Assembly: GCA_964187785.1 (NCBI GenBank)
Contig: OZ076417.1
Location: 36,084,001-36,148,000, forward strand
Reading direction: 5' to 3'
Origin: Amphiscolops sp. MND2022
Taxonomy: Eukaryota
DNA length: 64,000 nucleotides
Each line of letters opens with the position of its first letter. The first letter of the stretch is position 1. Both the position numbers and the translations under genes were made by a program. The notes below the pieces were generated by a model. That model searched no databases. It saw only the letters and a program-made list of their open reading frames with translations, and had not been told where the DNA came from. Below are positions 3,701 to 24,626 of this stretch, piece by piece.

Positions 3701-6700
3701 TAGCTTCGGTATCGGAGGTGCTTCGATTAAAATGTTGAATGCAAGATTTCAATGAAAGTATGCTTCGAGCAATATAGTTTCTGGTGTTTCAAGTTTACAT
3801 GCAGTTTTTCATGAAACCGTTATCTGGCATATCACCCGTCTTTCATTGAATATTGATTTTCAAAATGACTTCTGAACCATGCCTTTTTTGTGCCAAATGA
3901 TTTTGAAGTGGCATTTGTACACTATTGGGTTTTGGATGAGTGAAATGTGTCATACATGAATAGTAAATCAATGGATGAAATAACTGATACAATTCCGTGT
4001 GTTTAGAGCGTGGCCACAAATCAACTGGATCTTAGTGCGTCTCTGGAAGGGCTGTGGCTTCGGATACAGGTTTCTACTTACTAGTAGTTTTATCTTTAAA
4101 TAGTTGCTCATCAGAAAAAGATAGGATCAATCTACAGTAGGGGGTGTTTATAACGGAGAGGTTTATAACGACGAATGTTTATAACGACCATTTTCCGAAT
4201 TCCTGTCATGTAACAAACGCTTGTAACGACAATCTTTATACCCACAGTTTTTATACCGACATTAAAAACAGCCAATCAGGGTCGTTATAAACGGCCCGTA
4301 CTGTAGAAATGCTTGACTAGAAAGAATTATGTTGACTTGAACCGATCAACGTATGCATGTATGAATTTTTCAGAATCATATAGCATTAGGCAAACCGGAC
4401 AGAGACTTCTTTGGTCATAATACCACTGAGTGAAAGCCTCGAAACGAGTGAATAAGTTTCAAAATGAGTGGATAAAAGTGGACTCAAGTATCTAAATATG
4501 AGGTACCAATAGTTGCAAGTCTGAGAAGTCCATCTTTCTTTTATTTTGTTAGCAGTAAGTATATACTGGGAATTTTTCCACGAATCATACTTCCCATTTT
4601 TTTCCTGATTACAATTAGGACAAGTTTAATTGTAATTATAATGGTAATTTCAATGTTGTTATATGGTAATTGTTAGTTAAGTATACTTCATTTATAAATG
4701 ACGAGTATACTTGTCCGTAAAATTGTTTCATGCCTAATTTTGTCTCTGTTAAGTACACGTATTTGGGCATGTTTTGTGTTTTGTGCAGGTATGCATTCCC
4801 TCCACACATGAGTCCTATCCGGTTGCGTCACTGCACCCAAGACTACGACAGTGCCTCGTTCCAGCGTCCGTGTCCCTCGCCAGTGTTCCAACAGCACGTC
4901 GCTGAACAACTCACCCAGGACGATGACACCATGCAACAGTTCATCAACAGGTTAACATTCATTCACACATTTGTACGAATTTTCGAGGTTTTTGGCATAG
5001 AGTAGAAATATCGTATAATTTGTCGGTTTTGATCAAAAAAACTGTTTTTTCCTACTACTGAAGTTCAAGATCGTGGGTTTCTCCTATAGCTGCATATTAA
5101 GGGGCGTTCGAATTGACAAAGCGAATTGTGAAGAAGAATTAAATAGTTGAAGATAGTCACTGGATTAGAATAAGGCACGCTCGAAATCGATTACAACATT
5201 TGAAAAGTATGGTGACTTACTATTGCATACAGGACAAATACGAATGACCAACGATGCAAACGTTCTGGCTTTTGAGCGCGGACCGTTTAAAGAACTGTCA
5301 AAAATTTTTGTAGACTTAATAGCAACCCTTTATAAAGTTTTTTGGAAACAGTCAGTGGTTTTGCCCAAGGAAAAGTGTTAAAAGCTGCTCTGCAATTGGA
5401 AAAATGACGGAGCTACAAGTCAATTGAATAATGCAGAAATTTCTACCGTTTTATTAGTGTTTTATCCATTGTAAATGCGCGGTTTAGCGAATAATGGTTT
5501 CAACGCCAGAACACTGTCGTGAAATTAAAATGTTATTCATAATTCCTTTCAAATTCGATGCCAATTGTCTTGGCCTTAAACCTTATTCTACTGATTCGAT
5601 TCCCCTGCACACATTTATTCCAATCACGTTCAGGTCAATTTGTTTTTTTGTTCAGTGTACTGAATCAGCTCAACTGGGCCTTTTCCGAATTCCTGACCCA
5701 GTTATCAGAAGTGCAGTCGACTTCAGAATATTCTTCTTCGCTCTCTCAAAACAGTCTCAACAGTTCGGGGGTTAGTCAATAGTCAATATCATAGTACCTA
5801 TGGAGGATAGTTTTATTTGCAGCAGTAAACAGTGTCGCATGATCTGATGTCTTCCGTGTGTGAAAACCCAAATGTTTCCGTGGATCAAATGTCATTTAGA
5901 AATCCTACATCCTCAACTAGAATTAAATGCGAAATCGCCACAATACAGGCCCAATTTCTGAACATTTCAGATTTTCGTTCCAAAAAATTATACAGTAGTC
6001 ATCTCACCGACAGTTGGTAGTGCTCAAGCGAATGCTCAAGAAACAATGTTTTTATTGAAAAATTGAGTGTTTTAAGTTGAAAAATTTTATTAAATATATT
6101 TGACAAAGTTGGAAACAAAACGCTCGCGGATATTTTACGTACTAAATATTCTTAAGGCGATTACATTTTCATAAGGCTTCTTAGTCTTAAACGATGCAAC
6201 TCGCAAAAAATTGGGAAAAGTTCGACACTTTTTGGTTCGTTAAAGGCATCAAAAAACTGTCACGTTTCTCTATACAAGAGTGTGCTACGTACCTAAATGT
6301 TTTATTTTGATACTCATACCCGCAAACATGTCCCAGAACTATTCAAAACTTACGTAGAACGTCAACAATTAGTCGAAATATATATTCTACAAAACTAACA
6401 AACCTTCACTTTTATCTGGAAAATAATCAGTATGCGTAAAATAATTGGTATCTTTAATTTAATTGGTCTGTTCAAATTAATTGGTATGTGTTGAATGGGG
6501 AACGTCATACAGACATAATGTAATACGCATTTAATTTTCAAACAATTCACTAAGCTGAAAACGCGTGTCTGATTTTGTCGGAATTATTATTATAACGTAG
6601 TCAGCTATGTTCACATACCCCTAGTGCCCTAAATGCAGGAGCGGAGCGACGTGCCACTTGGCCATGCCTCAATGTTGCTACCTTTCGAAGGGAGCGAAGC

Positions 6701-9700
6701 GACCGAGCCATACAACAAATACGCTAACCTCTTCAAATAAATCAAGTTCCATATATCTTGGCTGCAACAGCACAAAGCTAGTAATTTGGATTCTGCTGTT
6801 TGAGATCTTCTTAAAAATTCCGTTGTATGAATAGTCGCCAGAAGAATTAGATGTGTATTACAATATGTCTGCAGTAGTTGACTCTGTTGAATGATGGTGA
6901 CTTTAGGTAAGTGATAACAGACGCAAACACAAACTGGTGGATACCTGTTTCGAGCTGTCGGTGGGTTTGCTGCGAGTGATAGAGCTGATAGTGGCTGTGG
7001 CGCCCCAGTTGTTCACAGACGCCAATCGACCCAATTCGGAGATACTCCTCAACCGACTCATGCAGCTGCTCAGTCAAGTAAGTACCAACGACACTGCTGA
7101 ACTACAGTGAAAAGCGTGCAAATGTTCTATTGGCGGTCGAACGAAATGGCTGTGAAATGACGAGCAGTTAATCGAAGTCTTAGTGCACACATTAACGACT
7201 CAAAATGAAGTAGATTTTGTCCATTGAATGATATTACAAAAAATCGGACCGTTTTGTCAAGGAAGTGATTTCTTTCAGGACTTTTTTTGATGAATTGAAG
7301 CTCATAGTAGTGTGTTCTTACAGGGAATGCTAAAAATTTCAGACAATCATCAAAACGTACTCCTTGTTCTTTCGAAATTCTCAAAAATTCAGCACTATTA
7401 AGCGGCCATGTTTTTAGATTTGAAAGTGGAATTTCTCCCATATTTCTTCGAACTTTATTGTTTCAGTACTTTTGAAAAGAAAATTAAAGGAAAATTGTAT
7501 TTATTCGAAAGAAAAACATTGTGGAAGCGATCGAAAAGTTAGAAATCACGGATTGTTTTTGAATAGATACTGTAGTGAAACGCTTTCATTCATTTAGCAA
7601 CACTCAGTACGACTGAATATGCAGTTGCGACTGAACTATCCATCTTCAACTAGTTATTGAAGTTCGAAAACTCTTTTGTATTTGTTTTGTATCTGTGTTG
7701 CAGGTCTTGTGTCGCGTGACTGCACACAATGGCTCGTTCCAGCAGATCATCCGTCGCAAGGGACTGGGCTTCTTGGACTCCGTGGGCAACTACCCCATCC
7801 TCACGCCCACTGCCGGCATACTCACCAGACTTGCGTTCCAGAGCCCAGCCAAAGGCCGAGAGGTTGCTACTACTTAGTAATAATATTTCCTATGAATTCT
7901 CTATTGTCATTGGTCGACAGCATCTTTCAATGATGAAACTATTATGTAACTTTGCAATCGACTAGAGTAAATGAAAGTCAAAGCATGCAATTTGTTAGGA
8001 GTCGGAAAAAATTTTCGACTACTTATGCAATCGTGCTGTTTTTTTTTGTTTTTTTTTCTCCCGACCTTTTCATGAAAATTTCAAATTTCTCAAAAACTGT
8101 CCATACGATTTTCACAAAATTTTGCAAAGTCATTCTACACCCAAAGGGGCCCCTGCGTGTGCAAAGGCATCAAAATCGTATGGCCTGGATGTGAGAAACA
8201 TAGCCAAATTTAGCCCAAAAATGGCCAAAAAACAGCCATTTTTCGACTTTTTTCGATTTTCTCAAAAACTGTCCATACGATTCGAACGAAATTTTCTACA
8301 GTTATTCTACACCATATTAGAGTCCTATATGTGCAATGGCATCAAAATCGTATGGCTGGGATGTTAGAAACATAGCCAAAATTAGCCCAAAAATGGCCAA
8401 AAAACAGTCATTTTTCGATTTTTTTCGATTTTCTCAAAAACTGTCCATACGATTCGAACGAAATTTTCTACAGTCATTCTACACCATATTATGGTCCTTT
8501 ATGTGCAATTTCATTAAATTCGTATGGCTGAGATGTGAGAAACATAGCCAAATTTAGCCCAAAAATGGCCAAAAACAGTCATTTTTCGATTTTTTCGATT
8601 TTCTCACAAACTGTTCATACGATTCGAACGAACGCGAGTCAGAAGGAAAAAGACTTAAGCCGACTCCTTTACCGCATATGCGGCTCTGGTTTTATATTAC
8701 CAATCGGTTATATTATCGAGCAGCTAAAATCACGGCTACCTAGCGCTGCAGGCTAAACTCAGAATAGGGCCGAAAAAAGGTTTAAAAAAACAATAGTATT
8801 CATTTCAAATGTTCTCAGAAATGGAGATATTCAAATGTTCTCAGAAATAGAGATAGGTGTTGGAATATTTATCCAATAAAGAGAATATTAAAGTTCAGTA
8901 AGTTCTCCTAAAAACCGAATAATTCTTTTCGAGATATTATACGTATGACTATTTTTGAGTAAACTTGGAAAGATGGTACGTTTAACAAAGAATTTGAAAC
9001 AAATGCTATCTTGAACCACACGACACATAACAAATAAATCGCAAGGGGGAATTTGAAAAAAAAAAATCAGCGACATTCATCACTTTGAACGGAATTCAAT
9101 ACATATTGAAAAGTAATGTTCATTCATTGCATTTTGTCTTGTTATTGTGTTTAAGTTCACATTTATTTGGGCGGAAAATGTACTACATGAAATAAGAATA
9201 TTAGATGGTTTCATAGGCTTAAACACAACAGTTGATAACAGACGGTTGAATAACCAAAAGCAATTTGGAAAGTTGAGAATTATCTATAATCAGGTTTTAG
9301 AATGTATGAAATCACTGGATATACTATAAACCAATCTAAGTTTCACGACATCTAAGCTAGTCTTGTTATTGCTTCATTCTATCAACTGAGAAGGACACAT
9401 AGATTAATGAATTTTTAAGATAATTCAACCTCCAGTAATATTCAATGATATTTATGTATACTTGTGTAATCAATTTATATATTCTCAAACAAACCACATG
9501 ACTTTTATAATAAGCTTCAAGATAGTGGAGAGGATCAGAAGTAAACTGAATGATCAGCCACTATAGCTAGTACTCCACAAAATCGTTTACATTAGTGTGT
9601 AGATGGTGGTGGCGACTGTGGTCTGGGGTATCGGAGTCGTAGCGCCGGTTCCGACAATGGTTTAGTAACCGGTTCGATGGCCACAAAGTGGAATTCGTGA

Positions 9701-12700
9701 ACCTCAACAAATGATTTTTTTTCAACTTTTAATGGTTTGAACCAACCAATCACTCGGAAACCGGCTCGTGAAGGACAACTCACCACTTTTCTCGACGCAG
9801 ACACACGTTTTCTTTTGTAGACTGACCGTCGCAGAATGAGCCAGGGCAAAGATCCACTGTTGGCACATTGTATTTGAACTGCAAATCAGTTGTCTCGAAA
9901 TGAAACGATTTTAAATCTGTCTCGTTCTCTATATCATACGGAGGTAGTTCATTGAACGTTGAACTTTCTAGCCTCAGTTGTTGGCACAGGAATGAATGGT
10001 TCAGATGTCGTTATAAGCAAATTTTGTGACTCAATAATAACTCCTCTGATTCGTGGTTCGATGATCGCAACAACTTTACCTGGCTATAACTCTAAATGAT
10101 CTCGGGTCAAAACACGACTTCTTTATCACTGGATGTGAACAGCGCCAGAACATTGTTTGAGTTTATTTCTCCAAAAAGGAAGAATCGATCATAATTAGCC
10201 TGTTGCAGCTTGTTTCTAGAGGGTGTGGAGTACCTCCCATGTCCAGACTGTTTATATTTGATAGGCTCGGAAGATCTTTTACCACGAAGGAAGGCCAGAT
10301 ATATTTTTTAATCTTCGGTATCATCGCCTGCTGAAAAGTCCGAGAAAGAAATTACATTATATGCTCGAGACAAATTTCTAGCACCTTTAGGATTTAAAGA
10401 CGACGCAAATGCGGCAGTTATTCTGGAATAACAATCTAAAAGAGGAAAGCGTATTGTCTTAATTCAAATGGTAAGTACTGCCAGAAATTAATTGTAACTG
10501 AGTCTTCAGATAAAAGTTCCCAAAATACTTACGGCCAAGCACTTTTGAAGACTTGCACTAATTTAAAATCAAGAGCTAGATGATTCAAATGAATGTTACA
10601 CAAGGAGCAAAGTGAAACTGTATCCTTGGTTGAAGGAGCAGAAAAACTTTTGCGCTTGTGTAAATAGCTTCCGTTAACTGAGAAAAACGTGATAAGGTGT
10701 GAAAAAACGTGAAGCAGTAATCAACACCTGGATAAGAAACTGGGTCTTCGTTAGTATTGGAGATAAAAACAGAAACTTCAAATATATCCTGGGAGTTGAT
10801 TGCCATCGAACTAGAACAATTGGAACAAACTGTATTGGAGTAAAACTGGCCACACTGACTACGTCTTTTCACGTTAGTTTGCCGCTTCTTACACCCACCT
10901 CTGCTTTTTTGTGAGTCGATGGTCAAGTAATGCAACAACAATGTGTCTAGAAAAACCATGCATGAAGACCACATGATTTATTATTCAAACGTTTTTAAGA
11001 AAAACAAGCGATAGATGCAAAACGCAAAATAATCGAGAGTAGTCTCAAAGATTGTAGCAGAATGAACAAAATAACTTGAAACCATGACAACGTTAAACAC
11101 GGGATCATTCGAATCAAGACCCGATTTTTAAGAAAAACACAAATCAACAAGTGGAAACGTGTTTTCGGTGTAACATTTAAATAATTATATGACACATTGG
11201 ATCATAAAAGTCAATAGTTGAAAAAAATTGATTGCCTAAACTGTAGCAACTGAAACTGGAACCTGAATGAGGAAACATCTTCTTCAAATTCGTTAGGTAT
11301 TTTGTGAACTTAGATTACATTTAAGTCAAATGACACAATTAGCAAACAGTTATCGATCAACAGGTACAACAACGAAACGAAAAAAAATGAAATAAAAGAA
11401 GAAATACAGCGGTTCCCACAAATTCAATAAACAATTGAATCACCAAGGAAAAATTTTGTTCTTTATAATACTCTTCAAACACGAAATGCCGTTTTCACCC
11501 AAATGCACTTCGTGGTCATTAACTACAGTAACCGCAGACATTTTAGTTCCCACTCCAAAATAGTGACATTGTGGTGGGACTTGACTAATAATGTAATTTA
11601 ATTGTTTCAGTCGATCAGCTGTACCATTCGTCCTTATTGGAACACCGACAATTGCTACTTTGCAAGCAGGATTCAAGAACTTAATCCGATGCACAGTTAT
11701 TCCAAATAAATAAGATTTCACCAGGCGTTCCAGCTTGACGCACTACATTATTTTTCAGGGAAATCGTTCACGCTGTTTCCACCAAGGAATAATAAAATTT
11801 TATTGTAATGGCGAATGAGCATGGCAAATCTGGAACCATGTACAAACGCATCCAAATTGTCCCTTCGGGCACGGGGACTACTTTTTTTATCGACTTGATG
11901 CATATAAAAGGTTCTTAGAAGAGAATCACCGACAATGAGGGTGCGTGGGAACGGCTTGAATCTGTTGATTCAGTAAGACATTTGAACTTGAATTCTCCGT
12001 TGAAGAAATGAAACATTGTTCAATCTGGAAAAAAACACTTCTTAAGAGGGAGACACCACCAATTATCATTGCCAAGAGGCATCATGAACGATGTGATCGA
12101 AGCTGCAATTGATGAAAGTCAGAAAATGGACAACGAACTTATTTAAAAAATCCGCAATCGTAACACCAAAAAATGACATTTTTCGTTACGCTGAACTCAT
12201 CTGAACGATGGTGGTGGCGACTGTGGTCTGGGGTATCGGAGTCGTAGCGCCGGTTCCGACAATGGCTTAGTAACCGGATCGATGGCCACAAAGTGGAATT
12301 CGTGAACCTCAACAAATGATTTTTTTCAACTTTTGATGGTTTGAACCAACCAATCACTCGGAAACCGTCTCGTGAAGGACAACGCACTCTTCAAGCACAT
12401 GCTGTATTTGTTAATAGCGCACCAGTGTTAATGAACTGAGTGAACTCCTCAACATTCCGTCTGAAGGCTACTAGGTAGAACATATTCGCATCTTGAGGCC
12501 TAATTCTCTCGTGATTCACGATGACCGCTTTAGCGAATTTTATAGAAGTGAAGGAGGATTTCTGGTGAGAGTTGCGTTCTATCGCTAACTGTTGGTTAGC
12601 GAACAAATGCTCTCAAACCCCATGTTCGAAGACCACTTTTCTCGACGCAGACACACGTTTTCTTTTGTAGACTGACCGTCGCAGAATGAGCCAGGGCAAA

Positions 12701-15700
12701 GATCCACTGTTGGCACAATGTATTTGAACTGCAAATCAGTTGTCTCGAAATGAAACGATTTTATATCTGTCTCGTTCTCTATATCATACGGAGGTAGTTC
12801 ATTGAACGTTGAACTAGCCTCAGTTGTTGGCACGGGAATGAATGGTTCAGATGTCGTTATAAGCAAGTTTTGTGACTCAATAATAATTCCTCTGATTCGT
12901 GGTTCGATGATCGCAACAACTTTACCTGGATATAACCCTAAATGATCTTGGGTCAAAATACGACTTTCTTTATCACTGGATGTTAACAGCGCCAGAACAT
13001 TGTTTGAGTTTATTTCTCCAAAGAGGAAGGATCGATCATAATTAACCTGTTGCAGCTTTTTATAGGGTGTGGAGTACCTCCCATGTCCAGACTCTTTATA
13101 TTTGATGGGCTCGGAAGATCTTTTACCACGAAGGAAGGCCAGATATCTTTTTAAATCTTCGGTATCATCGCCTGCTGGAAAGTCCGAGAAAGAAATTACA
13201 TTACATGCTGGAGACAAATTTCTGGCACCTTTAGGATTTAAAGACGACGCAAATGCGGCAGTTATTCTGGAATAACAATCTAAAAGATGAAAGCGTATTG
13301 TCTTAATTCAAATGGTAAGTACTGCCAGAAATTAGTTGTAACTGAGTCTTCAGACAAAAGTTCCCAAAATACTTACGGCCAAGCACTTTTGAAGACTTGC
13401 ACTAATTTAAAATCAAGAGCTATATGATTCAAATGAATGTTACACAAGGAGCAAAGTGAAACTGTATCCTTGGTTGAAGGAGGAGAAAAACTTTTGCGCT
13501 TTTGTAATAGCTTCCGTTAACTGAGAAAAACGTGAGAGGTTGATCAGCGGTAGAAATGCGTTTACAACTGAAGCAGTAATCGACATCTGGATAAGAAACT
13601 GGGTCTTCGTTAGTATCTGGAGATAAAAACAGAAACTTCAAATATATCCTGGGAGTTGATTGCCATCGAACTAGAACAATTGGAACAAACTGCCTGGAGT
13701 AAAACTGGCCACACTGACTACGTCTTTTCACGTTAGTTTGCCGCTTCTTACACCCACCTCTGCTCTTTCGTGAGTCGATGGTCAAGTAATGAAACAACAA
13801 TGTATCTAGAAGAACCATGCATGAAGATCACATGTTTTATTATTCAAACGTTTTTAAGAAACCCAAGCGATAGATGCAAAACGCAATATAATGGAGAGTA
13901 GGCTCAAAGATTGTAGCCGAATGAACAAAATAACTTGAAACTATGACAACGTTAATCACGGGATCATTTGAATCAAGACCCGATTTTTACGAAAAACCTC
14001 AAAATCATTAAGTGGAATCGTGTTTTCGGTGTAACATTTAAATAATTGTATGACACATTGGATCATAAAAGTCAATAGTCGAAAAAAATTAATTGCCTAA
14101 ACTGTAACAACTAAAACTGGAACCTAAATGAGGAAACATCTTCAAGTTCCTTAGGTATTTTATGAAATTAGATTACAATTAAGTCAAATGACACAATTAG
14201 CAAACAGTTATCGATCAACAGGTACAACAACGAAACGAAAAAAAATGAATTAAAAGAAGAAATACAGCTGTTCCTACAAATTCGATAAACAATTGAATCA
14301 CCAAGGAAAGACTTTGTTCTTTATAATACTCTTCAAACACGAAATGCCGTTTTCACTCAAATGGACTTCGTCGTCATTAACTACAGTAACCGCAAACCTT
14401 TCAGTTCCCACTCCAAAATAGCGACAGTCTAGTGGAACTTGACTAATGTAATTTAATTGTTTCAGTCGATCAGCTGTACCATTCGTCCTTATTGGAACAC
14501 CGACAATTGCTACTTTGCAAGCAGGATTCAAGAACTTAATCCGATGCACACTGTTATTCCAAATAAATAAGATTTCACCAGGAGCTCCAGCTTTACGCAC
14601 TACATTATTTTTATTGAAATCGTTCACGCTGTTTCCACCAAGGAATAATATAATTTTATTGTAATGGCGAATGAGCATGGCAAATCTGGAACCATGTACA
14701 AACGCATCCAAATTGTCACTTCGGGCACCGGGACTACTTGTTTTATCGACTTGATGCATATAAAAGGTTCTTAGAAGAGAATCTCCGACAATGAGGGTGC
14801 GGGGGAACGGCTTGAATCTGTTGTTTCAATAAGACATTTGAACTTGAATTCTCCGTTGAAGAAATGAAACATTGTTCAATCTGGAAAAAACACTTCTTAA
14901 GAGGGAGACACCACCAATGATCATTGCCAAGAGGCATCATGACGATGTGATCGAAGCCGCAATTGATGAGATTAAGAAAATGGACAACGAACTTATTTTA
15001 AAAAATCCGCAATCGTAACACCAAAAAATGACATTTTTTCGTTACGCTGAACTCATCTGAACAATGGCGGTGGCGACTGTGGTCTGGGGTATCGGAGTCG
15101 TAGCGCCGGTTCCGACAATGGTTTAGTAACCGGATCGATGGCCACAAAGTGGAATTCGTGAACCTCAACAAATGATTTTTTTTCAACTTTTGATGGTTTG
15201 AACCAACCAATCACTCGGAAACCGGCTCGTGAAGGACAACTCACCACTTTTCTCGACGCAGACACACGTTTTCTTTTGTATACTGACCGTCGCAGAATGA
15301 GCCAGGGCAAAGATCCACTGTTGGCACAGTGTATTTGAACTGAAAATCAGTTGTCTCGAAATGAAACGATTTTATATCTGTCTCGTTCTCTATATCATAC
15401 GGAGGTAGTTCATTGAACGTTGAACTAGCCTCAGTTGTTGGCACAGGAATGAATGGTTCAGATGTCGTTATAAGCAAATTTTGTGACTCAACAATAACTC
15501 CTCTGATTCGTGGTTCGATGATCGCAACAACTTTACCTGGGTATAACTGAATGATCTCGGGTCAAAACACGACTTCTTTATCACTGGATGTGAACAGCGC
15601 CAGAACATTGTTTGAGTTTATTTCTCCAAAAAGGAAGAATCGATCATAATAAACCTGTTGCAGCTTGTTTCTAGGGGGTGTGGAGTACCTCCCGTGTCCA

Positions 15701-18700
15701 GACTGTTTATATTTGATAGGCTCGGAAGATCTTTTACCACGAAGGAAGGCCAGATATATTTTTTAATCTTCGGTATCATCGCCTGCTGAAAAGTCCGAGA
15801 AAGAAATTACATTATATGCTCGAGACGAATTTCTAGCACCTTTAGGATTTAAACACGACGCAAATGCAGCAGATATTCTGGAATAACAATCTAAAAGAGG
15901 AAAGCGTATTGTCTTTATTCAAATGGTAAGTACTGCCAGAAATTAATTGTAACTGAGTCTTCACTTTTGAAGACTTGCACTAATTTAAAATCAAGAGCTA
16001 GATGTTTCAAATGAATGTTACACAAGGAGCAAAGTGAAACTGTATCCTTGGTTGAAGGAGGAGAAAAACTTTTGCCCTTGTGTAAATAGCTTCCGTTAAC
16101 TGAGAAAAACGTGAGAGGGTGTGAAAAAACGTGAAGCAGTAATCAACACCTGGATAAGAAACTGGGTCTTCGTTAGTATTGGAGATAAAAACAGAAACTT
16201 CAAATATATCCTGGGAGTTGATTGCCATCGAACTAGAACAATTGGAACAAACTGTATTGGAGTAAAACTGGCCACACTGACTACGTCTTTTCACGTTAGT
16301 TTGCTGCTTCTTACACCCACCTCTGCTTTTTCGTGAGTCGATGGTCAAGTAATGCAACAACAATGTGTCTAGAAAAACCATGCATGAAGACCACATGTTT
16401 TATTATTCAAACGTTTTTAAGAAAAACAAGCGATAGATGCAAAACGCAAAATAATCGAGAGTAGTCTCAAAGATTGTAGCAGAATGAACAAAATAACTTG
16501 AAACCATGACAACGTTAAACACGGGATCATTCGAATCAAGACCCGATTTTTAAGAAAAACACAAATCAACAAGTGGAAACGTGTTTTCGGTGTAACATTT
16601 AAATAATTATATGACACATTGGATCATAAAAGTCAATAGTTGAAAAAAATTGATTGCCTAAACTGTAGCAACTGAAACTGGAACCTGAATGAGGAAACAT
16701 CTTCTTCAAATTCGTTAGGTATTTTGTGAACTTAGATTACATTTAAGTCAAATGACACAATTATCAAACAGTTATCGTCTCAACAGGTACAACAAAACGA
16801 CAAAAAAATTGAAATAAAAAAAACAGCGGTTCCCACAAATTCAATAAACAATTGAATCACCAGGGAAAAACTTTGTTCTTTATAATACTCTTCAAACACG
16901 AAATGCCGTTTTCACTCAAATGCAATTCGTGGTCAATAACTACAGTAACCGCAGACATTTTAGTTCCCACTCCAAAATAGTGACATTCTGGTGGGACTTG
17001 ACTAATAATGTAATTTAATTGTTTCAGTCGATCAGCTGTACCATTCGTCCTTATTGGAACACCGACCATTGCTACTTTGCAAGCAATATTCAAGAACTTA
17101 ATCCGATGCACACTATTATTCCAAATAAATAAGATTTCACCAGGCGTTCCAGCTTGACGCACTACATTATTTTTAGGGAAACCGTTCACGCTGTTTCCAC
17201 CAAGGAATAATATAACTTTATTGTAATGGCGAATGAGCATGGCAAATCTGGAACCCTGTACAAGCGCATCCAAATTGTCACTTCGGGCACCGGGAATACT
17301 TATTTTATCGACTTGATGCATGTAACATGTTCTTAGAAAAGAATCACCGACAATGAGGGTGCGGGGGTACGGCTTGAATCTGTTGTTTCAATAAAACATT
17401 TGAACTTGAATTCTCCGTTGAAGAAATGAAACATTGTTCAATCTGGAAAAAAAACACTTCTTAAGAGGGAGACACCATCAATTATCATTGCCAAGAGGCA
17501 TCATGAACGATGTGATCGAAGCCGCCATTGATGAGATTAAGAAAATGGACAACGAACTCATTAAAAAAATCCGCAATCGTAAAACCAAAAAATAACATTT
17601 TTTCGATACGCTGAAATCATCTGAACGTAAAAAATCGAACCAAAAAACGAGCTATTCTGAAGAAACGGCAACGAACGTAGCAAACTTCAAGCGATATTGT
17701 CAATGAACTCCAATTTGAAAGCAAGCGATACCAACGAAAAGCCAAATACTACAGTAGACGCATTGCGCCACTATTGAGTGATCTTTCAATGATGAAACTT
17801 ATGTAACTTTGCAACCGACTAGAGTAAAAAAGTCAAAGCAATTTCTTCTATATTACCATTCGGTTATATTATCGAGCAGCTAAAGTCGCGGTTACCGAGC
17901 TAGATATTTCTGACTGACAGCGAGCGCGTATTAATTACTGGATTATGGATCCTCACATTCAAAGTTGTAAATGTGAAAAATCCTTATCACTTAATTGTAA
18001 AGTTCTTCTATTAAAATGCAAAGGTTTGTTGTTCATTTAAATAACAAAGCGTTAAGCCCAAGTTGCTTAATGCTTCAAAGCCCAAGATTTAAATGCTTTT
18101 GGCGAGTCTTACTAGGTTTGCACTGCTTTTGTTGTTGGAGTTATTATTTGAAATTATTGATAAATTTTGAAATTGTTCTACTCATCAATAATAATTTCAA
18201 AGTTTCAATAATTTCAAACAAAACCTGGGTTTTCAGGTGAACGGTCGGGTCCATTTCCTCTATGCTGATTATTTCCCTTGCCACGGCCTCAGTAAACATC
18301 CAAAAATGACCTTCCCCTCCCATGACTTTGAGGAAAAGGGACACCTATTTCCAGGTTGAGTTTTTATCGCTATAGGTGGCAATCAACGCTCTTCTGAACG
18401 AAGCAACCTTCACTCTAGAGTCGTTGGAGTTCATGATCCCCCCACCCGCAGTGCCACCTAGCGAGACTTCGACCAATGACAAGAGAGACGGTACAGAACA
18501 ACAGCCGCCTCCACACTTCGAGAAGTTCTCTTTCTGCAATTACGAAGAGGTCAGTCAGTGCAATATGGTAGTGTTACGTCACGTCATCTTGAATAATTTT
18601 TTTCTTGTTACATGTTCCTTTTTGCATTACTAGGTGACCCACAAAAAGTTGTGCACATTTTTGTTCGATGAAATTGAGAAGAAAATATGAGTGAACAAAA

Positions 18701-21700
18701 TCTCAAATGTACTCATGTATGTTTTGAAAGAATTTTCAATGCTCTCACGGTGAAGAAAGTTATCTAAAGGCTTTTTCTTTACTCAAAACAAGAGTTAAAG
18801 GGGTCCGTTCGGTGAATGAGAAAAATTCGAAGAGGTTGTTTTCATCATTTCATTATGTAGAATTGTAGAAAACAAAGCTCTTTAGGTGCTTCCTATATTG
18901 CATCAGACGAAGTTGTTAAGTTAAGAATGTAGAATTTTTGGTTGAACTTTTTTCCCGAAAAAGTGACGAAAAGCCACTATAAATTTTAGTCGGGTCGGCT
19001 CTTTTCTTGAGAAAAGTGTCTGACTAATACAGTGGCTAGTTTTTTTGCCACACCAGAGCTCACCCTGTATGTACCACTTTTTAGTACAGACTTTAATCGG
19101 TTTAGGGGGAACCCAGCGGTCGTGGGTTCGAGTCCCTGCTTCAGCCAGAAATTTTTTCGTGCATTTGCGAACCGGACGAGACTGAAGGTTCCCCCTTTCA
19201 ATTTTTTTCCGGCACTGTGAGACTTCGAAATTTTTTTGTCTTCAAATGGCCCTCCTTCGATTTTATTGAAGTTCCTCGTAATATTCGGAGTAAAGCGCTA
19301 TATTCGAATTTTTGATGTTATCTCCGAACTACAGTGGTGTGAAGAAAGAATGCGACTTAGCTGCTCAAAAAGGCTAATTTTGCAGTCTCATATCTCCAAA
19401 ACTATTCGAAATGATTCAATTTTGTAAAAACAAAAGTTTCTTGAATTTTTGCGATGAATACAATGGTTTTTGTTTCAAATTTCAACCATCATTGTTTTCG
19501 AAGTTAGAAACATGTGATTTTGGGAGGAAAATAATTAAAAATGCTAATTTTTGAGAAAATGTCAGTGATCCAATGAATATTTTTTGATAAATTTTGCCTT
19601 GCAGATGCACTTAAATCTCTCGAAAACGAAGATGAAATTTGATTTTGGATATATTTGGAAAATGTATATTGGTGGGAGTTTTACCAAGTGTAAGTCTGAA
19701 ATTCCTATCTTAATACATGTATTTTCAATTTTACTGAGCGAAAAAGTGCTCCCATTTTTGTTTTCTTGGTGATTTCCACAAACAAAAACTATCATGGGAT
19801 TGAGAAAAATTAGAGAAATTTTTGGGTATAATTTTCATGTAAAAATTATCCCCGAAAGACGGTAAAATATTAAAAATACTGATTTTTGCGAGCGATCGAT
19901 GCTCGTTAAACCAATGAGCTTTGAGCAGCGAGGCTTTGTGAACCAATCAGATTAGAGAATTCTTTGCATTCTGAGCAACTAGGTCGCATTCTTTCTTCAC
20001 ACCACTGTATGTTGCGTTTTACTGAGGAGGGGGGGGGGGGGGGTGGAGTAGGAGGAGGCGGATTTGCGGAAACAGAGTTTTTAAGGAAAACGTCCTACAC
20101 ATATTTTTGAAATTGCACTTTTTGACCCTTAGATATAGCGCCGACTTTGGACGTTTCCGTCTTGTTGGTATTTATAGTACCGACTAAAAATGACGGCATC
20201 GAATTGAAATGAACGGAATGCCCGTGAAAACAAGAGCTTTGGTGAAAATGATAACCGTCAGTTGTTTCGACGCGGAAACTTTCAAAAAGAATTGAAATTT
20301 ATGATTGAATTGAAAATATGATCAATTAGGCACAATCGAACTTTTTCTAACACCCAATCATGAGTGTTTCTAGAAGTCGACAAGAACACTCGTGTTTTTT
20401 GCTAGTGTGTGCTGTGATCAAAATAAATCTGGAAAAAATCAAATTCTACAGAGAATTGGCGCAGTGGTTGAAGCAGCATGTTCCGTCCTTCATTCCGGAC
20501 ACAACATTTTTATTGCAAAAACATTGAATTTTGAATAACAAATGACGTACTTTTAAAAACGTCGATACACATTCGAGCATTATTTCTGAGCCTTAAGTGA
20601 AACACCGATTAATGACGTTGCCAATTCTTTGAATATTTCTCAAAAACGGAGGTTTTTGCAAGGCAGGTCATGTATAACAAAAGATCGTATTTTTTGACCA
20701 TTTTGATAAAATTTGGTGTTTGGTTTTGTAAATCTGCCCTCCATTTGTTGAGGTTTTCAGTATTTATATATACGGGGACCGTTACTGACACTCACTGCAA
20801 GGAGGCTCTGCAGCTTGCAGCGATTCGGCACTATCTCATCTTTCAGTCATAAAATTGCCCCTTTGAACTCTGGGCCATCATTCCCGTTGCAGACCAACAT
20901 AGTTTCGCTTCACACGGTCCCTTTAACATCAGAGAATATAAAAAAAAGATAGTATCTGATAAATCGATAATCAATACCTTTGAAATCAGCCTCGCACATT
21001 CTTTTGAAACTGTTTCAGATATGCACAGAGGAGATAGAACAAGTTCAACGTCTGCTGGAAATTCTGCGCACAGAGAAGACGCAAGAATCGTTGCGGGGCG
21101 TGGCCACCGGGCGTTTGAAGCCCATTTCGGACGAAGAACTGTGTCCTATATGTTGTGCCTCTGAGATCTCAGTCTCGTTCGTCCCTTGTGGACACACTTC
21201 GTGCAAGGCTTGCATCCAGCACCAACTTATGAACAGGGATGATCAATTTAAAAGAAAAAGAAAAAAAAACACTGAATTCCACTGGCTAAATGAAATCAGG
21301 AACTTTTATTTACAAGAGGTGGTGTACATAAACTTGGTTACAAAATATTAAAAATTTAAAGACGGACGATGTTTTTTTTTGATTAATCATAAACAATGCG
21401 AATTGAATCCAATGAAATTGTTCACTTAAATACTTGTTCATTCAGGAGTTCACAAATGATAATGATTTCAAATCTCCTGAAGTTCTAATCCAGCATTTTT
21501 AGATCCAGCACAGAGATTTTTGTACGGTTCTAGGGAGCTATTTTGCTTTTTCAAACAGCAAACGCTGTCAGTTCAAAATCAAGATTTTTAAAATGCTGGT
21601 AAGGCAACGGGTTGGTTTAACGAACCATCTTGTTTCGCAAGTAAATAGAAATTGGCATCTTTGGCTATTTGAAAGCTTCTCAATTGTTTCTCAATGAAGT

Positions 21701-21821
21701 ATTATGTATCGTTTTTTGTTCATCCCTGTTTTTCAAACTGAACAGAAATGAATGTTTCTTCTGCAAACGACCGGTGGAGAAGTTCACAAAACTAACCCAG
21801 GCATCCAACATCAGTAATTGA
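786..21821 (+). CDS. RNF123: E3 ubiquitin ligase RNF123/KPC1, 3' half (5' exons lie upstream of the window); C-terminal RING finger
   Basis: Exons 786-933, 1444-1665, 2664-2889, 4007-4069, 4789-4950, 5656-5770, 6907-7077, 7704-7862, 18376-18549, 21019-21236, 21746-21821. They total 1734 nt (577 aa plus stop) and every phase is consistent. Recognisable RNF123 motifs: [84 protein letters not shown], and [33 protein letters not shown]. All introns are GT-AG except the last (GG-AG). Confidence 0.93.
1731..2176. mobile_element. hAT-type MITE (446 bp)
   Basis: TIRs CAGTGTATTG / CAATACACTG; perfect 8-bp TSD ATACGGAC (1723-1730 and 2177-2184); many internal TACACGA motifs. Confidence 0.8.
3040..3240. 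repeat. Diverged fragment of dispersed repeat family A
   Basis: Shares the ...caatgccgaaaaaaa... and tctgcttgg motifs and a degenerate B-box-like segment with the family A copies. Confidence 0.4.
4135..4303. mobile_element. Tc1/pogo-type MITE (169 bp)
   Basis: Flanked by TA on both sides; imperfect TIRs CAGTAGGGGGTGTTTATAACG vs reverse complement CAGTACGGGCCGTTTATAACG; internal TTTATAACG repeats. Confidence 0.7.
6545..6781. repeat. Partial copy of dispersed family C (fuller copy at 51444-51783)
   Basis: About 200 bp of clear similarity to 51590-51750 (cagctatg.tcacatacc.ctagtgccctaaatgcaggagcg...gcgaagcgaccgagccat...gctaacctcttcaaa). Confidence 0.75.
7994..8692 (+). mobile_element. Non-autonomous Helentron-like element (DINE/HINE type) with internal ~180-bp tandem repeats
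   Basis: 5' subTIR AGGAGTCGG (7997-8005), 3' subTIR CCGACTCCT (8660-8668), 3' palindrome CCGCATATGCGG (8672-8683), T-rich insertion site, about three internal tandem units. The equivalent site near 17845 is empty. Confidence 0.65.
9592..10435 (-). pseudogene. Orphan protein X, copy 1 (frameshifted, ~250-bp internal deletion)
   Basis: Homologous to 12200-13279; carries C-P-G-S-F-C-D-G-Q and [10 protein letters not shown] in different frames. Confidence 0.6.
10585..10974 (-). other. Cys-containing orphan ORF Y, copy 1 (129 aa)
   Basis: An ORF of equal length recurs in all three units; family not recognised. Confidence 0.3.
11440..11969 (-). pseudogene. SGNH/GDSL hydrolase, copy 1 (frameshifted)
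   Basis: [10 protein letters not shown], PxAR and DHEVHL are present but split by small indels relative to copies 2 and 3. Confidence 0.7.
12200..13279 (-). pseudogene. Orphan protein X, copy 2 (most complete; includes a putative 54-nt GT-AG intron at 12422-12369)
   Basis: 210-aa ORF 12585-13217, then a frameshifted 71-aa segment 12391-12606. Removing 12369-12422 joins FINT|[11 protein letters not shown] in frame. Confidence 0.6.
13429..13818 (-). other. Cys-containing orphan ORF Y, copy 2 (129 aa, central part in a different frame)
   Basis: Homologous to the ORFs at 10585 and 16007. Confidence 0.3.
14298..14825 (-). CDS. SGNH/GDSL hydrolase domain, copy 2 (open frame)
   Basis: The frame is open upstream of the listed Met and gives [18 protein letters not shown] (block I Ser at 14778-14780), PGAR (block II), FLGGNSVND (block III), GVPIR and DDEVHL (block V Asp/His). 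The true start or upstream exon is unresolved. Confidence 0.72.
   Translation of the reverse strand, partial: NNRFKPFPRTLIVGDSLLRTFYMHQVDKTSSPGARSDNLDAFVHGSRFAMLIRHYNKIILFLGGNSVNDFNKNNVVRKAGAPGEILFIWNNSVHRIKFLNPACKVAIVGVPIRTNGTADRLKQLNYISQVPLDCRYFGVGTERFAVTVVNDDEVHLSENGISCLKSIIKNKVFPW
15053..15890 (-). pseudogene. Orphan protein X, copy 3 (same ~250-bp deletion as copy 1)
   Basis: ORF fragments 15241-15477 and 15053-15310. Confidence 0.6.
16007..16396 (-). other. Cys-containing orphan ORF Y, copy 3 (129 aa)
   Basis: Nearly identical to copy 1. Confidence 0.3.
16857..17387 (-). CDS. SGNH/GDSL hydrolase domain, copy 3 (open frame)
   Basis: [10 protein letters not shown] (Ser at 17340-17342), [13 protein letters not shown] and DHELHL all in one frame. 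Confidence 0.72.
   Translation of the reverse strand, partial: NNRFKPYPRTLIVGDSFLRTCYMHQVDKISIPGARSDNLDALVQGSRFAMLIRHYNKVILFLGGNSVNGFPKNNVVRQAGTPGEILFIWNNSVHRIKFLNIACKVAMVGVPIRTNGTADRLKQLNYIISQVPPECHYFGVGTKMSAVTVVIDHELHLSENGISCLKSIIKNKVFPW
17503..17806 (+). pseudogene. Small Lys/Glu-rich (coiled-coil-like) ORF remnant, complete only in the last unit
   Basis: [27 protein letters not shown]... continues, with stops and a frameshift, to ...[11 protein letters not shown] inside the right terminal repeat. Copies near 12085 and 14940 break off at the unit junction. Confidence 0.35.
18984..20166 (+). mobile_element. Family A Helentron-like element with a nested MITE
   Basis: 5' hairpin ttttagtcgg...ctgacta; internal B-box GGGTTCGAGTCCC (about 19123); cggcactgtgagac body motif; 3' end ccttagatatagcgccgactttggacgtttccgtcttgtt. 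Confidence 0.55.
19332..20007. mobile_element. Tc1/mariner-type MITE (676 bp)
   Basis: 36-bp TIRs CAGTGGTGTGAAGAAAGAATGCGAC(T/C)TAG(C/T)TGCTCA with two mismatches; TA at 19330-19331 and 20008-20009. Confidence 0.88.
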
Positions 21822-24626
21822 AACTCATGATGTAATACAGTGGATATGACGCCAGCCCAGTGTTGGTAGGGTGCCAGGTCAGCTAGCCGACGATGTAATT
21901 GGCTGATAAAAAATGAGAGCAGCGGAATTAGCTGTGAATTGGAATTGAAGTGATTTGAAAGGAATTAGGGCTGCATAAAGTTCAAGAAATGAAACTTTTA
22001 AAAAGTGAAAATTCAATTTTCTATCTCTTAACATAATATTTAACGACCTTTTTGTTGTCAAATCGATATTTGATACGGATCTAACTTTTGATTTTGCTTA
22101 CTAGGGTTACATAATATTGAGAATGGTTTTTACTTATATGCAATCATAGTCAATCGTGTCGGTTAACTTTCGGTCGGCCGATTGCACCATCATCTAATGG
22201 GAGTCCAAATAATACGTCATTGCCGACTTACATTATAACAACGTTAATTTGTGTTGAGGTGCTATTTGAAATAGTTGACCGATTGAGTTTCGCCTCGTTT
22301 CAGAGGAACTAAAGTGAATAATTTTTAAGGACTCATTCCTTATTATGGCTGAGATATTTTCAAACTGGTTTTGGCCAAACTTCCTAATCTCCAAACTCCA
22401 TTTCCGCCTAATGAGGATGCGAATGTTATGTGCAGTTTTGAGTTTCTTCTCGAATTTCGGAGGAAAATATGTCCGGTGGAAATACTCCGGTCTCCTTGTT
22501 GTCTTTTTGTAACCCACTAATTGTAACTAAGTTGATACGAAATGGTACGGACGTTATATCTCAGACGATGTTCCCGCTCGCCACGATTAACGACCCAGCC
22601 ACCCACAAAAATTACTTTGTAATCTCAGAGGTGAAAATACAAAACATCTCCCGCACTATCATACATTTAATTTCAATTTTGTTACAATTAGTGTTCTACA
22701 AAGACCGTAGTTAACCTTGGTTTTTGATTGATGTGTTAGGAGAATTACATAAAAAGTAGAACATCTCGTTTTCAACAAACCAACCATCATTCGAACATTT
22801 TGGCGTTTCAAAATTGGTCGGCTACTGTCATTAGCGTGTTTTTAGTTTAACCAAATTGTAAAACTGATTCAAAGGTTTGCTAAATGATTTAATTCTTGGT
22901 ACATAAAGGTACTTTTCTTAGTTAAAATTAAATTGCTTTCAAATATTTGTTCTGAAAATTAATTTTAGTGTTCGATAGACGTTTGTTTTGTGTCTTGAGA
23001 TAGAATGAATAATAATCAAAGAACAAACATCTTTTAACCTCATCGATGAAGTTTGAGCGAATCCGGATATGTAAATATTTGATAGAACACCCCTGTTTCG
23101 TTTTTAAAAAAATTCGCCATGCTTTATTTTCATAACGCTAGATAAAAGTGCTCCTTCCATCAGAGTTTTGACACCGCTAATCAGCGGCCGCGCAGAATTT
23201 TTCAGCAATTTTTTTAGCGATTCAAATGAGCGGCATCAAATAGATAGTCCGAATTCGAAATTTCTGAGTATACACGAAGTTTCAAAATGAATTTCGAAAA
23301 ATTCCAACTTTTAATCTTGTAAAACCCACACAATATGAACAATTCTAGTCTGTCTTGCAAAAACTGAATTAGGAACTTCTAAATCATACTTGAAGTTAAA
23401 CATCTGATAATTTGCAGAAAGTTCTTCAACGGATATTAAAATGAACGGTTTAGCGATTAGCGACAAAAAGCGATGTCAAAGCCCTGCCGTCCATAGAATT
23501 CAACTACAAAATTTGGTGGTTTAAGTGTTCATATCTGGCATATGTGGTATCTAGAACTTCTCTGGCAAAGAAAGCTCGAAAATAATGCTAAACAGTTATA
23601 CTTAATTTTGAAGTTTTGGTACAAGTTTTGAGCGTTTTCGTTAGCACATAATTGAGTCTGCGTTTTCACTCGTATTTCTGAAAAGATCCGACTGTAGATT
23701 TTTGTCTTTCATGAAATGAAACAGAACGAAGATTCTTTTGGAGTTATTGTCCACCCTTATACAAAACACGTCCTCAATATTTCTCCGTCAAGATTTGACA
23801 TTTTTGGCTCATCATTCAAAATTTTCTCAAGCTGGTATTGATATTCAAAAGATCGCATTTTTGAGCCTTAAATGGTGCCAATCGCATCTTTCGTTTTATC
23901 AAACTTTCAAAGTTTTTAGATTTGGTTTTTCTTTTTAATTCGAGGTAAATGTGCTGTGTAGACCAGTTGCTTAGTTCTATAAGTTCCCGGGCAAGATGTC
24001 TTGGGTTCAGTTTCTGCAAAATCCGAACGCGTTTTTTTAGACACGTAAGGTTCCGTGTTTGTATTTTTATCATTTCTGCGATAGCTCAAGATGTCTACTT
24101 TTTTTCCAGTAAAATTTTCGTCGCGCTACTGAAAAATTCAGATATTTTGTTCGACAGTGACTATAAGCGTGAGAATTAAATTTCCCAAGCTGCCGACGAC
24201 AATTCAATCCTAGTGCGATTGAACGAGCGAGTGGTAATTATGCATTCTTACGCTCTGACGTCGAGATGAAGCGAGCAATATTCGTAATTATGCTTTCGTA
24301 CGCCGAGTTTTTGAGATGAAGCGAATGATTGTTAATTATTCGCTCGCCGAGAGCTTCGCCTGCATTCAAATGTGAATGCGAAACTTCGTCTACATTTAGT
24401 AGTTATATTTTCTTAGTCCGAGATTTAAAGGCGGTATAAACTAATACTGTGATTAATTGTGCGCTAAAACGATTAAACAGGAGTGTATTGGTATTCTAGA
24501 TATGATTATATTATTATTGAAAGATTAAAGCAGAAATAATTGTGTGCCCTGGTGGTGCCTCTTTTTGAAAACTGGAACTAGTTAATACTAATCGAAATTC
24601 ACTGTCAGCCCAGGCAATCTTTCGGA

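Follow-up and report, generated by a model that had tools for sequence, protein, structure and literature searches.

Three tandem units in an intron of an RNF123-like gene

The DNA analyzed here (the window) is a 64-kb stretch of contig OZ076417.1 of Amphiscolops sp. MND2022, in which an intron of an RNF123-like gene accommodates three head-to-tail copies of a segment of about 2.6 kb. We regard these copies as the inner part of a decayed Helitron-like transposon with a high degree of confidence. Two exons of the host gene, matching positions 45-87 and 85-139 of the TPR_RNF123 profile, were found on the plus strand upstream of the intron (~6937-7100 and ~7695-7870, respectively), and a RING finger exon of the same gene was recognized by its profile match at ~21130-21250 (plus strand). 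As RNF123-like exons on the plus strand flank the array on both sides, the array is intronic and, being on the minus strand, antisense to the host gene. An initial annotation of the sequence had described three head-to-tail units in an RNF123 intron, and repeat finding, self-BLAST, and the exon profiles all agreed with it on this point.

In the orientation of the element, unit C (15064-17627, minus strand; 2,564 bp) comes first and unit A (9603-12207, minus strand; 2,605 bp) last, with unit B (12208-15063, minus strand; 2,856 bp) in the middle, the latter keeping ~245 bp of the gene for a protein termed X that are absent from both A and C. The pairwise identities among the three units ranged from 94.3 to 96.9% in global alignments, and no fourth copy was detected elsewhere in the 64-kb window by self-BLAST. 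Each unit bears on the minus strand the remnants of three open reading frames (ORFs), namely an SGNH-like ORF (~150 aa open), Y (129 aa), and X (210 aa at most), in this order. The ten ORFs of the units gave no match to Pfam, even at E <= 1, and neither reverse transcriptase (RT), transposase domain, nor recombinase was visible within the units by the same search. An Rfam scan of the window returned no family. The small plus-strand ORF that the initial annotation assigned to every unit is present as 71 aa in units A and C but is interrupted in unit B, which leaves no open stretch longer than 40 aa; this ORF runs antisense to Y, matched no family, and is probably a product of chance.

At the two junctions between the units, the end of X abuts a site that lies 152 bp inward from the 5′ end of the element, with microhomology of no more than 1 nt and with the terminal motifs of the element (see below) absent from both. 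The units resemble one another in a mosaic manner: over the first ~600 columns of the alignment, A and B are closest to each other, and beyond them A and C, including a deletion shared by the latter two. This mosaic pattern in the alignment indicates that the units probably exchanged sequence among themselves at a later time. A simple unequal crossover was considered for the origin of the three units and rejected, as the mosaic together with the order C-B-A is not what a single crossover in an array of two units would give.

Positions 11585-14217 of the window were 100% identical to contig ctg185339_91x of ENA sample ERZ25074608. In the same sample, contig ctg185063_110x (locus L003) was collinear with positions 5026-23883 of the window (18.9 kb) at 98.8% identity and has three units as well. 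The two contigs belong to a HiFi assembly and were covered at ~91x and ~110x, respectively. The copy number of three is thus not a quirk in the assembly of a single contig. The two contigs are either haplotypes or a very recent duplicate. The stretch identical to the window sits at 470662-473294 of ctg185339_91x (477,958 bp), which by collinearity would stop near position 6921 of the window, yet the window extends all the way to position 1; a different assembly of the haplotype represented by ctg185339_91x may be the source of the window.

The units are the leftovers of a larger element

Full-length relatives of the insertion in the same genome are ~12.4 kb in length and carry an SGNH/GDSL-like gene (~200 aa), a gene for a giant protein, and the X gene (~350 aa), in this order. 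Among them, L004 is decayed but retains all of the three genes in order (SGNH, giant ORF, and X), and two more full-length copies, L005 and L006, are heavily broken, with the SGNH gene preceding the giant ORF. Each unit in the window corresponds to positions <1-1538 of L004 joined to positions 9957-10920, with a DNA identity of 75-92%. As the units match L004 as two joined parts, each of them appears to be what was left of a ~12.4-kb element after one internal deletion of ~8.4 kb, which took the spacer and all but a small part of the giant ORF, and left both ends of the element in place. We assigned the remnants by tblastn of the proteins of L001, a locus with an autonomous copy, against the window: the SGNH ORF corresponds to the 206-aa gene that precedes the giant ORF, Y to residues 20-160 of the giant ORF, and X to the gene downstream of it.

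All of the nine gene remnants (SGNH-like, Y, and X in three units), which are on the minus strand, are broken. The SGNH-like remnant has one frame change and one stop in unit C (16860..17455), where tblastn of the intact homologue P0008 covered 196 of 197 residues at 75% identity, the same numbers of lesions in unit B (14301..14893; 78% identity to P0008), and two frame changes and three stops in unit A (11443..12037; tblastn). Besides the large deletion, Y suffered one stop in unit C (15912..16121; approximately residues 80-160 of the 2,391 residues of the giant ORF) and in unit A (10457..10699; approximately residues 80-160), and one frame change and one stop in unit B (13301..13713; approximately residues 20-160). 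The X remnant is most complete in unit B (12224..13265), with 342 of 346 reference residues, two frame changes, and at most seven stops (a maximum, since the matched stretches overlap), and the 210-aa X ORF (12585-13217) is inside this remnant. In unit C (15080..15876), 263 of 346 reference residues were recovered with one frame change, two stops, and one internal deletion; the same internal deletion is present in unit A (9619..10421), accompanied by one frame change and four stops. Since all nine remnants are broken, the locus has no coding function today. Because only the first ~160 residues of the transposase remain, we judge the window copy to be non-autonomous; the GIY-YIG domain found in the relatives (see below) was located in the deleted part.

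Extent and termini of the insertion

The similarity to the full-length relatives does not cease at the borders of the array but continues for 152 bp on the 5′ side and for 863 bp on the 3′ side. As it does so on both sides, we regard the array as contained in one insertion of 9,040 bp (8740..17779, minus strand), the limits of which were set by the similarity to L006, L004, and L001. The unique 5′ leader of 152 bp (17628..17779, minus strand) is 92% identical to positions 9556-9709 of L006, and the similarity ends at position 17779 of the window, equivalent to position 9556 of L006. At this limit lies the 5′ terminal motif (17763-17779, minus strand), which begins with ACTCAATAGTGG and occurs once in the window; two other matches with three mismatches were at the level of chance. 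L006 possesses one full copy of the motif and a partial copy with three mismatches (L006:9460-9476; ~30 nt alike) 96 bp upstream of the true 5′ end, and the latter possibly represents a solo 5′ end or the result of a local duplication.

The unique 3′ tail of 863 bp (8740..9602, minus strand) shares 77-92% identity with positions 10935-11973 of L004, and the similarity to both L004 (11973) and L001 (11935) ends at position 8740 of the window. The tail closes with a terminal block of ~35 nt (8740-8773, minus strand), finishing with CAGCGCTAG, which is common to L004, L001 (four sites), and L003. This block occurs once in the window (8740-8760) against zero occurrences expected by chance, and is conserved across families of which X proteins are only ~60% identical, and the sequences adjoining it in L004 and L001 are unrelated or unalignable. 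The terminal CTAG was present at all 3′ ends seen, and a T follows CTAGR at four distinct ends with the exact motif, which we take as suggestive. The three 5′ ends are preceded by the bases C, G, and A, and the flanks do not have the A...T configuration. A T^T target was considered and rejected, as the 5′ side of the third 5′ end contradicts it. The flanks of the insertion in the window, a single complete copy, share no repeat that can be taken as a target-site duplication. DNA folding of six termini gave no signal of a hairpin or a 5′ structure above shuffled sequences.

A 172-bp tandem repeat in 3.2 copies (8079-8632) is located ~48 bp from the 3′ end of the element. In view of the repeats associated with Helentrons, it was considered as a part of the element, and this possibility was rejected because L004 and L001 diverge directly after CTAG. 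The repeat with its flanks (8048-8691 of the window) matches positions 4025-4398 of L006, far from the element there. As it matches this unrelated place in L006 and the relatives diverge after CTAG, the sequence comparison points to a separate interspersed repeat with an internal tandem structure.

The parent element encodes a giant RepHel protein with a GIY-YIG domain

The giant protein of the full-length relatives comprises 2,300-2,800 aa, with N-terminal zinc-binding clusters, an HUH/two-tyrosine Rep domain, a PIF1-like SF1B helicase C-terminal to Rep, and a C-terminal GIY-YIG domain. Judging from this domain composition, we identify the protein as a Rep-helicase (RepHel) transposase of the Helitron type. 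The giant ORF is 2,391 aa in L001 and split into two pieces in L002, with the X homologues P0003 and P0005 directly downstream. In the L001 protein, PIF1 (E = 2.6e-12) and GIY-YIG (E = 4.3e-07; 30.6 bits vs. the cut-off of 22.6) were above the Pfam cut-offs, and its matches among PDB sequences were PIF1 helicases (E ~1e-10) and, for the GIY-YIG part, SLX1 (E = 1.5e-04). The intact P0020 (2,411 aa), encoded at L007 in the same genome, scored above the Pfam cut-offs for all three domains, Helitron_like_N, PIF1, and GIY-YIG. When 37 family proteins were aligned, H1153 and H1155 of the HUH motif, Y1329, and Walker A (G1795...K1801) were invariant, and Y1333 was conserved in all but one of them (36/37); in the work on Helraiser, the bat Helitron transposase is said to have two tyrosines three residues apart, as is the case for Y1329 and Y1333. 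Several N-terminal Cys/His clusters are conserved in the same alignment, for instance C69, C72, C110, and C113, which belong to the region surviving as Y in the window.

The part of the L001 giant ORF from Rep to the C-terminus, when used as a query, retrieved 52 clusters of 1,300-2,900 aa with E <= 1e-85, nearly all from ENA/JGI metagenome assemblies. According to the precomputed Pfam domains, GIY-YIG was present in 27 and Helitron_like_N in 24 of the 52 clusters, OTU was found in some, and AP endonuclease (Exo_endo_phos) in none. At least 27 clusters, from host-associated metagenome assemblies, have GIY-YIG as a stable component of the C-terminus of RepHel. DUF6570, the marker of HLE2 (one of the groups of Helitron-like elements, HLEs), was not detected in the family proteins checked against Pfam. 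Several clusters hold multiple intact copies on different contigs (giant ORFs of 2,361 aa; grouping at 90% identity), suggesting that some lineages expanded recently in other genomes.

In L001, the autonomous copy is immediately followed on its 3′ side by at least four tandem units of ~1,436 bp (L001:11936-17650), and the 3′ block closes the autonomous copy (11915) as well as the first three units (13351, 14787, and 16208). The parent family can thus form tandem arrays that bear the terminus, a feature that sets them apart from the array in the window. From position 17848 of L001 onward lies a second RepHel element with an identity of only ~26%. The P0059 cluster contains near-identical Logan contigs of 8.09-8.12 kb, which consist almost wholly of one RepHel-type ORF of 2,605 aa; these contigs may be assembled transcripts, hinting at the expression of a distant relative.

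Protein X is an RPA-like protein

Although X was introduced as an orphan in the initial annotation, it belongs to a family of 130 representatives (HMMER, E <= 1e-3), including the full-length homologues P0003 (346 aa) and P0005 (362 aa); the homologues of the 210-aa ORF itself were few but clear. In the alignment of 50 members, C191 is the sole invariant column, and C196, C206, C208, G193, and D197 are nearly invariant. None of the 50 members matched Pfam, and the profile of the alignment found nothing in PDB at the sequence level. The AlphaFold2 model of X was obtained with a pLDDT of 92 and a pTM of 0.91, and its best matches in Foldseek were eukaryotic and archaeal RPA, CST and Teb1 of Tetrahymena, LEF-3, HIN, POT1, and RADX, with probabilities of 0.97-1.0 and E-values down to 2.5e-06. 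The global TM-scores were low (0.2-0.3), as expected when domains are oriented differently. Based on this model, X is confidently predicted to be a tandem OB-fold, RPA70-like single-strand DNA-binding protein. The tandem OB-fold architecture is common to X, RPA70, archaeal RPA, and LEF-3 of baculoviruses, whereas no sequence similarity of X to these proteins, Pfam membership in RPA included, was detectable, and the likeness is in the domains and not in the geometry of the whole chain. RPA70 has a zinc-bearing OB domain, with which the conserved four-cysteine cluster of X (C191, C196, C206, and C208) can be compared.

The X-like gene was found downstream of the giant ORF in L001, L002, L004, L007, and L008 (E-values of 1e-47 and 8e-37 by hhalign). 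The loci bearing X span giant ORFs that are only ~34% identical and extend to a third sample, albeit the most distant relative, which bears OTU (L009 and L010), yielded no X-like gene. RPA-like genes are known as accessory genes of Helitrons (PMC11417382; PMC6431247).

The SGNH-like gene is restricted to one subfamily

The intact P0008 (197 aa) and the 206-aa protein of L001 are 41% identical, with the four SGNH blocks (GDS; G; GxN; DxxH) in order; the SGNH ORFs in the window start after block I. The profile scores were below the threshold, namely E = 0.18 for Lipase_GDSL_2 and E = 0.86 for acyloxyacyl hydrolase, the best PDB profile. The search of the SGNH-like ORF against PDB sequences yielded noise only, and the AlphaFold2 model, which was based on an alignment of five sequences, was unusable (pLDDT 38). 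The SGNH hydrolase named in the initial annotation is therefore plausible as regards the motif blocks, and was backed neither by the profiles nor by the model.

The SGNH-like gene is within the ends of the element in both the window and L006, but is limited to one subfamily, as the gene preceding the intact giant ORF of L007 (L007:4783-5487; 234 aa) is unrelated to the SGNH-like gene. The L007 gene has no Pfam match. From the loci compared here, the upstream accessory slot appears to be variable and the downstream RPA-like gene conserved. In teleost fish, the SGNH gene texim is located directly upstream of the coding region of a Helitron and moves with it (PMC4021074), an arrangement with the same gene order as in the parent element. 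The combination of genes that the initial annotation could not recognize has thus a precedent in fish. GIY-YIG is not described for the texim-associated Helitrons, and they are likened to the parent element by gene order only.

Origin of the insertion and the array

Altogether, we consider it highly probable that the region 8740-17779 on the minus strand is a single dead Helitron-like insertion, intronic and antisense to the host gene, which was deleted internally, and of which a 2.6-kb inner segment was triplicated afterwards. In this scenario, a full-length element of ~12.4 kb would have lost ~8.4 kb with both of its ends retained, and then the inner segment of 2.6 kb, comprising the SGNH gene, the stub of the giant ORF, and X, would have been triplicated in tandem. 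We infer that the triplication was most likely caused by an ordinary error in host replication or recombination. Exchange among the units and mutational decay would have come last. As for the intact relatives, what is known of Helitrons suggests that Rep would nick the element at the 5′ end, the helicase would unwind it in the 5′ to 3′ direction, the RPA-like protein would coat the displaced strand, and the transfer would stop at the 3′ block ending with CTAG. GIY-YIG probably supplies a nick in the target or the second strand, as the AP endonuclease of Helentrons is thought to do.

Several observations weigh against this scenario or the assignment to Helitrons. The Rep domain of L001 alone was below the Pfam threshold (E = 0.015, besides a weak match to REP_ORF2-G2P), and we identify it because it aligned with relatives that pass the cut-off. 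The membership of the SGNH-like protein, for which the sequence motifs are the evidence, is plausible at best. No other copy with the same ~8.4-kb deletion was found. The 5′ end is ACTC and not TC; the four 3′ ends had no hairpin, with z-scores of 0.08-0.89 and none below the shuffled mean; and the 13 matches in 16 positions between the 5′ end and the subterminal 3′ block, a candidate terminal inverted repeat, were reached by 117 of 500 shuffled sequences. The ends seen amount to three independent 5′ ends and four to seven independent 3′ ends. Finally, in view of the terminus-bearing arrays of the same family in L001, the triplication may conceivably have been driven by the element itself.

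The last point bears on the alternative that the array is a by-product of rolling-circle replication, in which Rep failed in termination or re-initiated and left head-to-tail copies. HLEs are known to form tandem arrays, and the L001 units with their 3′ block lie directly after an autonomous copy. A concatemer produced by read-through should nevertheless carry the terminus at every junction, whereas in the window the 3′ block and the 5′ motif occur once each, and at the junctions the end of X meets a site 152 bp inward from the 5′ end. We regard this origin as unlikely. Less likely still is the interpretation closest to that of the initial annotation, in which the 2.6-kb cassette itself was a transposase-free, mobile or episome-derived unit, such as an endogenous virus or circular DNA, integrated as a concatemer. 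The dense ORF remnants, the integer number of units, and the lack of a visible transposase domain within the unit would agree with such a cassette. On the other hand, the similarity to the 12-kb RepHel relatives covers the whole unit and runs on beyond the array by 152 bp and 863 bp, and the junctions are free of the terminal motifs, which speaks against independent amplification. The unit is not transposase-free in origin either, as Y belongs to the transposase, being the zinc-finger N-terminus of RepHel. In the protein collection, the cassette was found only at the window locus and its allele. The related loci yielded no gene for a capsid, polymerase, or integrase, nor were capsid, DNA polymerase, or packaging genes among the called genes and Pfam matches of L001-L010, in which small unannotated ORFs were not searched by structure. 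The retroelements bearing SGNH (CR1/L2 ORF1, Ngaro, and Penelope-like elements) give no better account, as RT and recombinase are absent from the units and the related full-length loci. Nothing points to a virus or circular DNA. What survives from the initial annotation is a non-autonomous derivative of a larger mobile element, in the form of an internal deletion, and its mention of Helitrons turned out to be the right lead: RepHel, which it proposed to look for in longer copies, is encoded by the full-length relatives.

Mis-assembly is a risk with tandem repeats of a few kb, and the initial annotation named an assembly artefact as a possible refutation. The two contigs, ctg185339_91x and ctg185063_110x, which are 98.8% identical, show three units each, and the units diverge from one another by 3-6% and carry indels, that of 245 bp among them; a mis-assembly of one unit is thus highly improbable. 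The duplication of a normal host gene cluster in place, in favor of which there is nothing beyond the presence of ORFs, receives practically no credence from us, as all the remnants are broken, and their homologues adjoin RepHel genes on many contigs from at least three samples.

Comparison with the known Helitron-like elements

The signature of HLE1 consists of 5′-TC, 3′-CTRR, a hairpin 10-20 nt before the 3′ end, and insertion at A^T. That of HLE2 (Helitron2/Helentron) consists of terminal inverted repeats of 12-16 nt, a 3′ stem-loop, insertion at T^T, and DUF6570, and the marker of Helentrons is an AP endonuclease (Exo_endo_phos) in RepHel. On sequence features, the parent family fits neither the canonical Helitron, Helitron2, nor Helentron. 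It resembles HLE1 in the HUH motif with two tyrosines preceding a PIF1-like helicase, in the CTRR-type 3′ end (CTAG), and in the absence of a target-site duplication, the last of which was seen at one complete copy. In contrast to HLE1, the parent family has ACTC at the 5′ end, no subterminal 3′ hairpin that we could find, the GIY-YIG domain, for which the catalytic-domain profile matched the C-terminus of the giant ORF in the relatives, and an N-terminal extension of ~1,000 aa with several Cys/His clusters. An RPA-like gene downstream of RepHel, as in the parent family, has been reported for HLE1 (PMC11417382).

With Helentrons/HLE2, the parent family shares a giant RepHel with an extra C-terminal nuclease and the association with tandem repeats. 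The non-autonomous derivatives of Helentrons/HLE2 retain only the ends, to which the deleted copy in the window can be compared, and their accessory genes are of OB-fold and OTU types, OTU being present in some relatives of the parent family. RPA, HIN, and Ssb-like OB domains have been reported in HLEs (PMC11417382). The parent family differs from Helentrons in that GIY-YIG replaces the AP endonuclease, and from HLE2 in that no DUF6570, significant inverted repeats, or 3′ stem-loop were found. The canonical Helitron and Helentron proteins matched the family query only at E = 1e-8 to 1e-5 with ~22% identity; for P0063 of the canonical Helentron type, the match covered 32% of the query region at 22% identity (E = 7e-08).

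In the literature, a Helitron-like family with GIY-YIG was found only as one moss family, HelenSM92 of Sphagnum magellanicum, mentioned in one sentence of the HELIANO paper as having GIY-YIG besides RepHel (PMC11417382), Repbase being outside the scope of the search. HelenSM92, compared by its description only, belongs to the HLE2 of plants and has short, clear terminal inverted repeats, TT targets, and a GIY-YIG domain described as captured. The parent family is thus barely described, and "undescribed" is to be understood with this qualification. We tentatively propose, putting the chance a little short of even, that the parent family may represent an undescribed major lineage of HLEs, characterized by a RepHel of 2,300-2,800 aa stably fused to a C-terminal GIY-YIG, a highly diverged RPA-like gene, an SGNH-like gene in one subfamily, and the ends 5′-ACTC...CTAG-3′ outside HLE1 and HLE2, and would be a counterpart of Helentrons that bears an endonuclease and arose independently.

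Other mobile elements in the window

A BEL/Pao long terminal repeat retrotransposon occupies positions 58148-63961 on the minus strand, with an uninterrupted ORF of 1,937 aa comprising DUF1759, RVT_1, Peptidase_A17, Integrase_H2C2, and DUF5641. This copy looks young, and accounts for the rise of G+C to 47-48% at the end of the window. A Tc1/mariner-type transposase was found at 54503-56469 on the plus strand in two ORFs, one with HTH_Tnp_Tc3_2 (54503-55054) and the other with DDE_3 (55915-56469).

Implications

The feature in the window is an ordinary, decayed transposon relic with no evident function, and this accounts for the cassette that looked unfamiliar at first. The significance of the relic is as a pointer to at least 52 clusters of giant RepHel proteins, at least 27 of which possess GIY-YIG, and to the RPA-like family of 130 representatives unseen by Pfam. 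Since the current classification of Helitrons (HLE1, HLE2, and Helentron) and the annotation tools are keyed on AP endonuclease, DUF6570, and canonical ends, the parent family probably escapes them or receives a wrong label. This family would supply profile models of X, the SGNH-like protein, and the N-terminal ~1,000 aa of the transposase for genomes of the invertebrate type. If it is a separate lineage, it would be a second, independent rolling-circle transposase with an acquired endonuclease, and would allow us to compare what the nuclease adds to such a transposase.

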